Notes under the pieces: generated by a model
The model's input: the letters and a program-made list of their open reading frames with translations, nothing else
What the model was told of the DNA's origin: nothing
Database searches by the model: none
Part shown: positions 44,190 to 50,917 of the stretch, one piece after another
Layout of the letters: each line of letters begins with the position of its first letter
Position numbering within the stretch: the first letter of the stretch is position 1
From: Salpingoeca rosetta
Lineage: Eukaryota; Protista; Choanoflagellata
DNA: 64,000 nucleotides
Direction of reading: 5' to 3'
Assembly: GCA_033442325.1 (NCBI GenBank)
Contig: JAWQFM010000015.1
Location: forward strand, 599,983-663,982
Program-made: the position numbers and the translations under genes

Positions 44190-44991
44190 AAAAAAAAAAA
44201 GAAAGAGCTCTGCCATGGCCCGGAATCGAACCGGGAGTAACGCGACCACAACGCGTAGTGTTACCATTACACCACCACGGCTCAAGCTCTTGCCGTTGCC
44301 GGGCAAATTTCGCATAGTTCATCTCTACCCGACCCCCCCACCTGGCCATTTTGTGTGTTTCTGATTGTGTGAGAAGCAAGAAAGCAGAACAGGAGGAACT
44401 TTGCTGTTGTGATTTGACATACACGTGATGCTTCCTTCTCTCCACACTCCACGCACCCACGTGTGTCTTCTTGTCTTGTCTTGCTTGTGAATGGTCTCTC
44501 TGTGTCTGTGCGTTGTATTCCCTTCCTTCCTTCCTTCCTTCCTTCTCTTCATCCACACTCCCTTCCTACCACCGTCTCCCCCTTCCTTCCTTCCCTTCCT
44601 ATCACCGTCTCCTTCCTTCCCAGACGCATGGCGTCCGTCCTGCGAGCAGCGCCAGTGCTGGTGCCAGTGCTGGTGCTAGTGCTGGTGGCAGCAGCATGCA
44701 ACCGATGTAACCTTCAGCAGCATGCATGCCCCTGCATGTGCGCGGCAGAGGTGGTGTTTGCGGAGGATGATGCCGGCGCGCTGCACATCAACACAAGCGA
44801 CCCAATGAGCCAGCCCGTGCTGGTCAACGGCGTGAACATGGGCGCAGTGTTTGATGCGGTGGCGGCGCAGCAGAGCATGCTTCAGGCATACCAGAGCGTG
44901 ATGGACACGCAGCAGAGCAGGATCAGCATGCAGCAAAGCAGGATTGCGGTGCAGCAAGACAGGATCGCCGCCCTGGAAGCGGAGGTGTGCA
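44190..44991. repeat. Left arm of a long inverted repeat: terminator, tRNA-His, spacer and 5' part of propeller gene A
   Basis: Reverse-complement match to 50181-50917 with few substitutions and a few indels, including an extra ~33-bp pyrimidine block and an extra 12 bp (PVLV) in the signal peptide. Confidence 0.95.
44211..44281 (-). tRNA. tRNA-His (GUG), copy 1
   Basis: Exact reverse complement of 50826-50896. Full cloverleaf, followed by a T-run Pol III terminator (A-run at 44189-44200 on +). Confidence 0.96.
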
Positions 44992-45953
44992 CACCAAGCA
45001 CCAGCGTGTTTGGGCAGTTGAGTGGTGCTTCCAACAAATGGGTGGGCGGTGCACTGGCGGGAAACGGCTTGATCTACGCTGCCCCGTTCAATGCCGATTC
45101 TGTCCTCATCCTCAACCCCACGACCAACACCGCGGACGTCACCAGCATCGCGGGTTTTACGTCCGGTGGCGGCAAGTGGGCTGGTGCCGTGTTGGCGGAG
45201 AACGGGCTGATCTACATGTTTGCCGCTTCTGCCACAAGCATGCTCGTCGTCGACCCCGAGACCAACAACGTGGACGTCACGAGCATCCACTCTCTGCCCA
45301 GCGGTGCCTTGAAGTGGGCCAGCGGTGTGGTTGCCGACAACGGCCTCATCTTCGCCATCCCCTACGCATTCCCATCCGTGTTAATCGTTGATCCAGCCAC
45401 CAACATCACCACCACCATTGCGCTGGACGGGCTCTCTGGGAGCGGCACTGAGTGGTATGGCGGTGTGCAGGCAGCCAATGGCCTCATCTACTGCTTCCCA
45501 TCTGCGGCGACGTTTGTGCTCATCATTGACCCCATCGCGCTCACAGCGGACACCACCAGCATCCAAGGGCTGGAGGCCGGTGCATACAAGTGGCTGGGTG
45601 GCGTGCTCGCGAGGAACGGGCTCGTGTACGGCATTCCAGCACGCGCTGGAACCGTGCTCGTCATTGATCCGACAACCAACAGCATTGACATGATCCGCAT
45701 CGCAAACAGCACCATCACGTCGAGGTGGGCAGGTGGCGCCTTGGCGGCCAACGGCAACATCGTCTGCATCCCTTACTCTTCGACACCCGCGCTCATCTTC
45801 AACCCAGCCACCAACGCGACCACGATGGTGGCTGTGCCGGATGTTGGTGAAGGCCCCGTCGGGTGGTGGGACGGTGTCCTCGCCCCCAACGGCCGCATCT
45901 ACGGCCTGCCGCTCTTCCCAGAGGTTGTCCTGGCCATCGACCCAGGATGCTGA
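44628..45953 (+). CDS. Secreted protein A (intron-free CDS): signal peptide, small beta-rich domain, Gln-rich coiled coil and a 7-repeat (kelch-like) beta-propeller
   Basis: 441-aa ORF with seven ~46-aa repeats of consensus KWxGGVLAxNGLIYxxPxxAxSVLIIDPxTN, ending DPGC*. Confidence 0.88.
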   Translation: MASVLRAAPVLVPVLVLVLVAAACNRCNLQQHACPCMCAAEVVFAEDDAGALHINTSDPMSQPVLVNGVNMGAVFDAVAAQQSMLQAYQSVMDTQQSRISMQQSRIAVQQDRIAALEAEVCTPSTSVFGQLSGASNKWVGGALAGNGLIYAAPFNADSVLILNPTTNTADVTSIAGFTSGGGKWAGAVLAENGLIYMFAASATSMLVVDPETNNVDVTSIHSLPSGALKWASGVVADNGLIFAIPYAFPSVLIVDPATNITTTIALDGLSGSGTEWYGGVQAANGLIYCFPSAATFVLIIDPIALTADTTSIQGLEAGAYKWLGGVLARNGLVYGIPARAGTVLVIDPTTNSIDMIRIANSTITSRWAGGALAANGNIVCIPYSSTPALIFNPATNATTMVAVPDVGEGPVGWWDGVLAPNGRIYGLPLFPEVVLAIDPGC

Positions 45954-46451
45954 TGTGTGTGTGTTTTTGTGCAGATGTGTGTGTGTGTGTGTGTGTGTGT
46001 GTGTGTGTGTGTGTGTGTGTGTGTGTGTGTGTGTGTGTGTGTGTGTGTGTGTGTGTGTGTGTCCTCTGCATGTGATACTCTTGGGTTCTCTCTTGCTTGG
46101 GCAGAGATAGGTAGTTTAGAATACAACATGAAGTCTAGGTCCTGCACAAACATCCCCTCGAGACAGCTCTCCTGTCTTCTGTCTTGCTTTGCGTGCTTTT
46201 GACTAGGTGTACTTTCATGTGTTGTCGCTTCATGTGTTGCGCCTGTCTATTCGTGCGCGCGCGTGTGCGTAGCGAGTACAGTCCCCTTCCTTCACATTGT
46301 TTGTGTCTTCATCACACTCACTTCACATCAGATCGTGTCAGCCCCATCACAGCAAAACACTGGTTGAGTGTTGATCTCTTCCCAATCATCCAACACTACG
46401 AGCACTGCCACTCCAGAAACTCCCCTCACAACCCTCTTCGCTTGCACCACG

Positions 46452-50825: not shown

Positions 50826-50896
50826 GCCGTGGTGGTGTAATGGTAACACTACGCGTTGTGGTCGCGTTACTCCCGGTTCGATTCCGGGCCATGGCA
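50826..50896 (+). tRNA. tRNA-His (GUG), copy 2
   Basis: Acceptor stem GCCGTGG/CCATGGC plus A73, D-arm GTGT-AATGGTA-ACAC, anticodon arm ACGCG-TTGTGGT-CGCGT, T-arm CCCGG-TTCGATT-CCGGG. No encoded G-1, as expected for eukaryotic tRNA-His. Confidence 0.96.
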
Positions 50897-50900
50897 GAGC

Positions 50901-50917
50901 TCTTTCTTTTTTTTTTT
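50901..50917 (+). terminator. RNA polymerase III T-run terminator of tRNA-His copy 2
   Basis: TCTTTC followed by 11 T, starting 5 nt after the tRNA 3' end. Confidence 0.85.

Follow-up and report, generated by a model that had tools for sequence, protein, structure and literature searches.

The closest described counterparts of the locus analysed here are of several kinds: the invertible switches of bacteria, among them Hin/Gin, the R64 shufflon and the invertible promoters of Bacteroides; concerted evolution by gene conversion between inverted paralogs, as seen in the palindrome arms of primate sex chromosomes and in mosaic multigene families; and, for the encoded proteins, secreted stalk-and-head proteins such as the olfactomedin family, which combines a signal peptide and a coiled coil with a beta-propeller, and the collectins and ficolins. 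Transfer RNA genes, for their part, are replication-fork barriers and fragile sites. A passage of PMC7990762 that cites Kellis 2003 describes yeast tRNA genes as the boundaries of rearrangements and states that in Saccharomyces sensu stricto every inversion found between species has oppositely oriented tRNA genes at its ends.

The present locus lies in a window of 64,000 nucleotides from Salpingoeca rosetta (contig JAWQFM010000015.1), to whose first letter all positions refer. Two opposite tRNA-His genes enclose two convergent intronless genes, A and B, with an acyltransferase gene at the centre (Table 1). As in the Saccharomyces inversions, opposite tRNAs of the same isoacceptor bound a multi-kb segment and the homology ends at the tRNA, but in S. 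rosetta, a choanoflagellate, the repeat extends beyond the tRNA to an 800-bp module with a promoter and 121 codons, and the locus is known in one orientation. As in palindrome arms and mosaic families, near-identical tracts occur in old paralogs, with sharp edges, discontinuously, and with identity that extends to synonymous and non-coding positions; unlike in those cases, A and B are homogenised in the 5' module only, their heads being divergent, and the outer edge is a tRNA terminator. The reading favoured here, at a probability of about 0.7, is that A and B are anciently diverged paralogs whose 5' modules have recently been homogenised by gene conversion. The locus is not regarded as a genetic switch.

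Table 1. Features of the tRNA-His-bounded locus, in window coordinates.
Feature	Position	Strand	Evidence
tRNA-His(GTG) copy A	44211..44281	-	ARAGORN; Rfam RF00005, 59.2 bits
tRNA-His(GTG) copy B	50826..50896	+	ARAGORN and Rfam
Arm A: Pol III terminator, tRNA-His, shared promoter/5'UTR, gene A codons 1-121	44190..44991	+	Identity, dS, depth
Arm B, inverted counterpart of arm A	50181..50917	-	Sequence comparison; B-side loose end in contigs
Second tract of probable conversion, gene A blades 1-2	45065..45265	+	Matches gene B 49895-50095
Gene A, intronless, 441 aa	44628..45953	+	Open reading frame; AlphaFold2 model; sense RNA reads
Gene B, intronless paralog of A, 440 aa	49210..50532	-	Open reading frame; B-specific RNA variants and loose ends
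Intronless divergent choline/carnitine O-acyltransferase-like gene	46452..48560	+	Pfam PF00755
(TG)43 directly 3' of gene A stop	45976..46062	+	Sequence
(TG)53 (sense strand) directly 3' of gene B stop	49049..49155	-	Sequence

A sequence-only reading of this DNA had described an inverted layout bounded by tRNA-His genes, with near-identical arms around three genes that lack introns, and this description is borne out. Both tRNAs are called, the outer ~800 bp of the two arms are ~99% identical in inverted orientation, and genes A and B and the acyltransferase gene are uninterrupted open reading frames, the only ones between 44190 and 50917. Long open frames are also found in the neighbours, namely the YTH gene (794 aa) and an ORF at 50792-52939 (715 aa). 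The ungapped blocks of the arms (150, 137 and 329 nt) are each 99% identical; the indels between them, of 1-33 nt, lie in TTCC-type microsatellites, and a 12-nt indel within the signal-peptide coding region also distinguishes the arms. The edges fall where that reading had put them, the outer ones at the Pol III T-runs, in an A/T run 21 nt past the 3' ends of the tRNAs, and the inner one immediately 3' of the LEAEVC codons. Codons 1-121 of arm A comprise the signal peptide, the EDDAGALHINTSDP motif and the coiled coil, and the non-coding sequence of A and B, out to the tRNA terminator, is as identical as these codons are.

The two tRNA-His copies of the arms are identical to each other and differ from the C6 copy, the only further tRNA-His found in the genome (three were detected in total), by one compensated acceptor-stem pair, U5-A68 vs C5-G68. 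Two independent DNA runs (2013 and 2018) cover the left flank at 1x, the arm at ~2x and the tRNA at ~3-4x. The stretch examined in this way was 43600-45950, on the A side, and the zero depth over the A head within it is uninformative. One contig from the DNA runs spans the left outer junction, and the B-side and C6-side junctions are visible as loose ends in DNA contigs, with the B-side flank end at 44190 in both runs. Because the arm stands at 2x depth and the junctions appear in independent DNA runs, the structure is not the product of mis-assembly of one arm, a possibility that had been put forward for checking.

The divergence of A and B is a mosaic. In successive codon intervals dS is 0.013 (codons 1-121), 1.36 (122-146), 0.20 (147-213) and 1.18 (214-441), while the proteins are 69% identical overall and ~52% identical in blades 3-7, with a dN/dS of ~0.35 in the heads. 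The claim that the variable propeller begins at the inner edge of the arm needs two corrections: A and B are homologous from the tRNA terminator as far as their stop codons, and they share a second near-identical tract (45070-45107 and 45136-45265 vs 49895-50090). Along this tract, 38 nt are identical, the next ~28 nt are diverged, and a further 130 nt have one mismatch; RNA reads derived from B sit on it and depart at 45265. Over the last 660 nt of either gene, alignments to other paralogs run for ~510-640 nt at 68% identity, whereas A and B match each other over only 172 nt, at 77%. No closer donor for either head was found in the genome, where the best match has 68% nucleotide identity. The trees conflict: for residues 37-120, A and B are sisters with support 100/99, and for blades 3-7 they are sisters in none of 200 bootstrap trees. 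An AU test does not reject old sister heads (p 0.256), so that the pair may go back to an old inverted duplication or to a later juxtaposition. Tracts of near-zero divergence inside an otherwise saturated pair, with discordant N-terminal and head trees, form the mosaic pattern of gene conversion, and other pairs of paralogs contain 5' tracts of 125-264 nt at 100% identity within alignments that are 74-80% identical overall.

Two other accounts of these patterns were tried and rejected. The N-terminal region is not merely more conserved across the whole family, its column entropy being 1.23 vs 1.05 for the propeller. Nor does the (TG)n shared by both genes mark the inner end of the duplication: TG/CA runs of 8 or more units number 71 in the window, and 14 of 29 paralogs carry a (TG)n of that minimum length 3' of the stop codon. 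Such repeats after stop codons are a genome-wide habit and lie outside the duplication.

Protein A has a hydrophobic N-terminus, a long helix at residues 71-120, a seven-bladed beta-propeller and the DPGC C-terminus found throughout the family, and its AlphaFold2 model (pLDDT 82) consists of the long helix and seven blades. Both genes carry the full family signature: an N-terminal EDDAGAxHINTSDP motif, the stalk, seven KW...NG.IY..P blades, C-terminal DPGC and the lack of introns. The S. rosetta genome holds at least 90 intronless full-length paralogs, many of them clustered locally in tandem or inverted order, and PTSG_06848, PTSG_08836 and PTSG_10778 belong to the family. Homologs occur in Microstomoeca roanoka and Hartaetosiga gracilis, close relatives being represented among the matches by transcriptomes only, and bacteria such as Spirochaetota commonly have homologs of the propeller domain. 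Further units of a tRNA with a propeller gene, for which a genome search had been suggested, did not turn up: no tRNA lies within 1.5 kb of any of the 28 other paralog loci with the highest scores. At E <= 0.1, neither A nor B has a match to any Pfam family, Vgb_lyase (PF24684) included; DUF6923 (PF21959) is precomputed on some paralogs. A PDB sequence search with gene A gave nothing significant (one match, E 0.63), an exact-sequence look-up of A, B and the acyltransferase in a protein collection gave no match, and a literature search for the propeller family in choanoflagellates found nothing relevant.

The closest structures to the propeller of A are those of Vgb, the virginiamycin/streptogramin B lyase (PDB 2z2o and 2qc5; TM-score 0.83-0.85, target-normalised; E ~1e-12), and a structure search of the Atlas returned the same neighbours. 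The predicted likeness to Vgb is one of seven-bladed fold only: the sequence identity is 8-11%, A and B show no match to the Pfam Vgb_lyase family, and they add a stalk and a secretion signal. With the olfactomedins and collectins they share a signal-like N-terminus, a coiled coil flanked by Cys, a C-terminal propeller head and loop variability on one face, but the propeller differs from that of olfactomedin in being seven-bladed and Vgb/SGL-like rather than five-bladed, and there is no sequence relationship. Within each blade, variability across the family is concentrated in two loops, one preceding the invariant KW and one following IP. A and B would be oligomeric extracellular binding proteins with their variable loops on one face of the propeller. 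The two genes are independently transcribed: within a very low RNA depth (28 and 38 reads of 101 nt), sense reads lie on the A-specific head at 45417-45890, and B-specific variants and loose ends in the reads show that B is transcribed.

The acyltransferase is unrelated to the propeller genes and is itself a duplicate, with a paralog on another contig. It matches Pfam PF00755 at E 2.5e-20 (73 bits vs a gathering cut-off of 22.3; profile positions 76-451 of 574); a PDB sequence search with it gave no match. Its residues 337-343 read DHVFMDG, with a candidate catalytic His at 47463-47465; this may be the E/D-H-x-x-x-D-G motif that holds the catalytic His of choline/carnitine O-acyltransferases. 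Its paralog, PTSG_03270 on contig C8, is 82% identical in amino acid sequence, and the nucleotide homology between the two covers the coding sequence and ~80 nt only. The three components of the cassette differ greatly in age.

One interpretation offered for this layout was a programmed switch of the phase-variation or shufflon type, in which the arms would recombine so as to invert the 5.2-kb core, swapping the propeller heads and turning the acyltransferase round. As in the bacterial switches, inverted repeats, here ~800 bp long and ~99% identical, surround a segment with alternative C-terminal coding parts, and the conversion tracts imply that the arms do interact. The S. rosetta locus nevertheless departs from those switches. 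No recombinase was found in it or in the neighbouring ORFs tested, there are no short sites, the arms being long homologous segments with microsatellite indels, and A and B each possess a promoter and an N-terminus of their own and are co-expressed. Since both arms contain a complete promoter, 5'UTR and N-terminus, a crossover would regenerate the same two genes with no change of expression; apart from a 4-aa indel in the signal peptide, C24W and V108M, the recombinant proteins would equal the parental ones. No single fixed promoter or constant region lies outside the segment to provide the asymmetry of a switch, and the acyltransferase gene is entirely inside the core, presumably with a promoter of its own. 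The sequence-only reading had itself seen no recombinase, and Pfam agrees: no domain of a recombinase, integrase or transposase was found in the cassette or in those adjacent ORFs that were tested, which encode a methyltransferase, a YTH protein and proteins with no Pfam match. A switch is accordingly regarded as very improbable. A passive inversion polymorphism, in which ordinary homologous recombination would occasionally flip the core with no functional effect, is compatible with the conversion reading and, although unlikely, deserves to be taken more seriously, given that the arms have recently recombined and that opposite tRNA genes flank the Saccharomyces interspecies inversions in the cited passage (PMC7990762, citing Kellis 2003). 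Of the Logan contigs (k=31), X3 joins the A-type form of the 12-nt indel to the base at 44949 that is typical of B, and X4 shows the reverse; such contigs break at every shared 31-mer and choose variants arbitrarily, and therefore carry no linkage information.

Two further explanations concern the origin of the cassette. In the first, tRNA-His and gene were recently duplicated together in inverted orientation and the heads then diversified very rapidly. This would account for the homology that the two copies show all the way from tRNA terminator to stop codon, and sister heads are not excluded by the AU test; it is disfavoured because selection at the protein level cannot give a 100-fold synonymous difference between head and arm of the same genes (dS ~1.2 vs 0.013), and the modest dN/dS of the heads and the lack of any closer head donor in the genome also speak against it, so that it is given little credence. 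The proposal that the cassette is an acquired module, a foreign or mobile element integrated at a tRNA gene in the manner of a genomic island, could draw on the tRNA genes at both ends, the intronless genes and the bacterial propeller homologs. The tRNAs, however, are full-length and inverted rather than direct partial repeats, no integrase was found in the cassette or the neighbouring ORFs tested, and the GC content of 0.56-0.65 is that of the flanks; together with the genome-wide abundance of propeller paralogs, their homologs in other choanoflagellates, the acyltransferase paralog on another contig and the very different ages of the components, this makes acquisition the least credible of the explanations considered. 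The more limited proposal of a duplicated module beside a tRNA gene stands, in that the tRNA-His, the promoter/5'UTR and ~121 codons are recently shared.

Under the favoured reading of gene conversion, the contrast in dS between the module and the heads (0.013 vs ~1.2) means that the heads are ancient and the 5' module was recently homogenised. The starting state would have been two old family members arranged tail to tail around the acyltransferase duplicate, each with a divergently transcribed tRNA-His upstream, and non-reciprocal homologous recombination between the inverted copies would have made their 5' modules identical. The converted module would run from the tRNA-His and its terminator through the shared promoter/5'UTR to the signal peptide, the conserved motif and the coiled-coil stalk; the second, short tract in blades 1-2 would have been converted too, and the rest of the heads would have retained their ancient divergence. 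The outer limit of the tract is probably the tRNA gene, which could act either as an outer homology anchor under selection or as a fragile site or breakpoint, and the inner limit is probably coding sequence conserved in the family. A search for residual homology beyond the arms found none, and with no homology outside them a classical two-sided conversion needs a pre-existing tRNA-His upstream of B; had there been no prior tRNA-His at B, a one-sided copy, break-induced or by template switch, could have ended in the A/T run. A partial copy of the 5' module would be an alternative to conversion, and conversion itself may have run in either direction, from A to B or from B to A.

The locus is probably a case of ordinary gene conversion, and there is no evidence of a new type of genetic switch. 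It provides a clean choanoflagellate example in which conversion would homogenise a promoter and stalk module while the predicted binding heads stay divergent, with a tRNA gene exactly at what would be the tract boundary; of the three tRNA-His genes detected in S. rosetta, two form a recently duplicated pair. A more far-reaching scheme would make the family a diversified extracellular recognition repertoire (at least 90 secreted forms together with TIR-linked membrane forms) whose promoter and stalk modules are repeatedly exchanged between heads by conversion, with the tRNA-His as an anchor and a reversible flip of the 5.2-kb core; as a whole this scheme is unlikely, somewhat more so than the passive inversion. 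The larger interest lies in the propeller family itself, with its numerous intronless genes for predicted secreted stalk-and-propeller proteins, its loop variability on one face and its TIR-linked relatives; the family is a possible repertoire for recognition or adhesion in the organisms most closely related to animals.

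Genes A and B are convergent members of a Salpingoeca rosetta family of intronless paralogs that encode a stalk followed by a seven-bladed propeller (the head), and the synonymous divergence between them, computed by the Nei-Gojobori method and also in 20-codon windows, is a mosaic: dS is 0.013 over codons 1-121, 1.36 over codons 122-146, 0.20 over codons 147-213 and 1.18 over codons 214-441. The tRNA-His gene and the non-coding 5' region that precede each gene show an identity equal to that of codons 1-121, and together with them form the two arms. The layout proposed by the sequence-only reading, in which inverted arms bounded by tRNA-His genes and ending on the inside at LEAEVC enclose three uninterrupted reading frames, was confirmed by ARAGORN, Rfam, alignment and an ORF scan.

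Features of the A/B locus (window coordinates)
Feature	Position	Strand	Basis
tRNA-His(GTG), A side	44211-44281	-	ARAGORN and Rfam
tRNA-His(GTG), B side	50826-50896	+	ARAGORN and Rfam
Gene A	44628-45953	+	uninterrupted ORF, 441 aa
Acyltransferase-like gene	46452-48560	+	uninterrupted ORF
Gene B	50532-49210	-	uninterrupted ORF, 440 aa
Arm A / arm B, inverted copies	44190-44991 / 50181-50917		sequence alignment

The arms align in ungapped blocks of 150, 137 and 329 nt, each 99% identical and separated by indels within TTCC-type microsatellites, and they differ by a 12-nt indel where the signal peptide is encoded. Their outer edges lie inside an A/T run, 21 nt past the tRNA 3' ends, and the inner edge falls directly after the LEAEVC codons. 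These edges stand as described, with the amendment that homology between A and B continues to both stop codons (69% amino acid identity), with a further, almost identical tract at 45070-45107 plus 45136-45265. On the outer side of the arms, a search found no surviving homology.

The possibility that one arm is a mis-assembly was checked over 43600-45950 with contigs from two independent DNA runs, one of 2013 and one of 2018, together with RNA runs from 2026. DNA word depth in the two runs was 35 and 90 in the unique left flank, about 61 and 138 in the arm, and 104-144 and 240-343 in the tRNA, which corresponds to ratios of 1x, 2x and 3-4x; one 721-nt DNA contig spans the left outer junction, and the loose ends at 44190, 44208 and 44281 lead into the flank on the B side and into those of a third tRNA-His locus. 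Because depth, bridging contig and loose ends agree in independent DNA runs, the inverted duplication is genuine and not an assembly artefact. The DNA contigs are broken at each shared 31-mer with an arbitrary choice of variant, and so carry no information on the orientation of the core between the arms.

RNA at the locus is weak (28 and 38 reads in the 2026 runs), but A and B are both expressed: the A-specific head carries sense-oriented reads, and reads from B stand out by their variants (44949 and 45185) and by the loose ends leading into B's head at 44991 and 45265. No splice joints were seen in gene A in these runs. Four reads of run X21 at 44943-45021, which carry the B variant and B head and come from B's arm/head junction near 50181, have a mate orientation opposite to that of the sense reads; this very weak signal, with only two start sites, may reflect antisense transcription of B, for example by read-through from the acyltransferase-like gene.

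The contrast within this one gene pair is 100-fold at synonymous and non-coding sites, and selection on the protein therefore cannot explain it; the notion that the N-terminal region is simply better conserved across the family than the propeller was rejected on family-wide variability. A tree of residues 37-120 joins A and B as sisters with support of 100/99 and almost no branch length. A tree of blades 3-7 is star-like and pairs them in 0 of its 200 bootstrap replicates, although the AU test does not reject their sisterhood there (p 0.256). For the last 660 nt of either gene, matches to other paralogs extend about 510-640 nt at 68%, but the match between the two genes only 172 nt, at 77%. 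The mosaic is the signature of a 5' module that would have moved recently and non-reciprocally between old paralogs, by gene conversion or partial copying; heteroduplex repair or repeated events would fit the second, discontinuous tract. Other family loci show the same habit of sharing 5' tracts: L019 and L023, with an overall identity of 74%, have in common a stretch of 264 identical nt around the start codon, and identical upstream tracts join L003 to L009 (155 nt) and L012 to L025 (125 nt). L019 (G000:C4:1459882-1464084; 264-nt tract at L019:2627-2890, 100%) and L023 (C4:1602376-1606608) are inverted relative to each other and separated by 140 kb; they also share an 818-nt tract in the 3' flank (L019:651-1468, 99.9%), which may have arisen by a further conversion or may be a repeat element.

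Two origins fit these data. In one, an old inverted duplication of tRNA-His plus gene had its 5' part kept homogeneous, and the selectively conserved tRNA would act as the outermost homology anchor; in the other, one-sided copying stopped at the tRNA terminator, within the A/T run there. It is known that tRNA genes act as fork barriers and as boundaries of rearrangements. For Saccharomyces, a passage of PMC7990762, citing Kellis 2003, states that every interspecies inversion is flanked by oppositely oriented tRNA genes. The window is C15:599983-663982 of a 55.4-Mb assembly, which public protein names assign to S. rosetta ATCC 50818. BLAST found only three tRNA-His loci in it; the two in the window are identical, and the copy on contig C6 (L033:1501-1571) differs by a compensated acceptor-stem pair (U5-A68 in the window, C5-G68 there). 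Further units of tRNA-His and propeller were sought, but no tRNA lies within 1.5 kb of any of the 28 other top-scoring paralog loci, so that there is no general tRNA-propeller unit. The idea of a module duplicated at a tRNA is partly right, in that the 5' module was recently shared with its tRNA, but the heads are old.

The (TG)n runs after the A and B stops were rejected as part of the duplication, since such runs are common window-wide (71 TG/CA runs with n of at least 8 in 64 kb, for example at 45976-46062, 48599-48618 and 49049-49155) and among paralogs (14 of 29 have (TG)>=8 within 200 nt after the stop). In the small set of genes checked for position (A, B, acyltransferase, YTH gene), (TG)n tends to lie on the sense strand just 3' of the stop.

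The middle gene matches Pfam Carn_acyltransf at 73 bits (cut-off 22.3) and contains a DHVFMDG motif; a sequence search found no solved relatives. Its sole paralog, PTSG_03270 on contig C8 (L050:1468-3579; G000:C8:1099061-1101136), is 82% identical in amino acids, and a word-indexed search gave no further homologs at E <= 0.001. Both copies are intronless and their nucleotide homology (85%) is limited to the CDS plus about 80 nt, a retrogene-like pattern; the acyltransferase thus arose by a separate duplication and has a history distinct from that of its neighbours. The sequence-only reading took the whole for an acquired or duplicated module. Acquisition is not supported: GC is 0.56-0.65, as in the flanks, the propeller family is old in choanoflagellates, the three components differ in age, and intronlessness is common to the whole family and the acyltransferase pair and so does not mark this locus. 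Nor is its comparison supported with a phase-variation or shufflon switch, which requires a recombinase plus asymmetry. No recombinase, integrase or transposase domain was found in the cassette or the neighbouring ORFs tested, as that reading had itself remarked, both arms contain a complete promoter, 5'UTR and first 121 codons, and A and B are co-expressed. A crossover within the arms would remake the same two genes, differing only in a 4-aa signal-peptide indel, C24W and V108M; passive inversion of the core by homologous recombination is plausible and, if true, would be functionally silent.

At least 90 places in the genome match gene A over its full length, free of stops and at 41-59% identity; contig C4 holds about half of them, and they are often clustered in tandem or in inverted orientation. 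The plan is the same in all 29 members aligned: the N-terminus is hydrophobic, and after it come an EDDAGAxHINTSDP motif, a helical region rich in Q, seven repeats, each about 46 aa long (KW.GGVLA.NGLIY.IP....VL.IDP.TN), and DPGC at the C-terminus. Pfam has no match to A or B, but an AlphaFold2 model of gene A from the 29-member alignment (pLDDT 82) has a helix at 71-120 and a seven-bladed propeller, whose closest solved structure, virginiamycin B lyase, has a TM of 0.83-0.85 by target and an identity of 8-11%, in agreement with an Atlas structure search. A family profile search returned 5530 clusters at E <= 0.001, the named homologs including some from S. rosetta, Microstomoeca roanoka, Hartaetosiga gracilis, a picozoan and Spirochaetota. 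Close homologs of the propeller, 35-50% identical, come from MAGs of Spirochaetota/Leptospiraceae, where Ig-like domains often accompany them, and from the picozoan single-cell assembly (P0065, P0177, P0184, P0187, P0199, P0200), and an old transfer of the propeller between bacteria and eukaryotes is possible. The S. rosetta protein PTSG_02868 (P0004, on another contig; 612 aa) combines a TIR domain (PF13676) with a C-terminal family propeller 52% identical to gene A. The exact A, B and acyltransferase sequences are absent from a 15-billion-protein collection; the nearest public S. rosetta protein is 52% identical to A, against up to 59% for genomic paralogs, and public annotation may lack many members.

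Variability within the family is concentrated in two loops per blade, formed by the four residues that precede the invariant KW and by those after IP, while the NG and DP.TN turns are conserved; by standard propeller topology, both loops would lie on one face. The A/B-type proteins would accordingly be secreted, probably oligomeric, putative binding proteins in which the stalk is constant and the head variable. The A/B locus adds a case to a process already known, gene conversion between paralogs in inverted orientation, here bounded by a tRNA gene, and the propeller family is a more interesting object than the locus itself.
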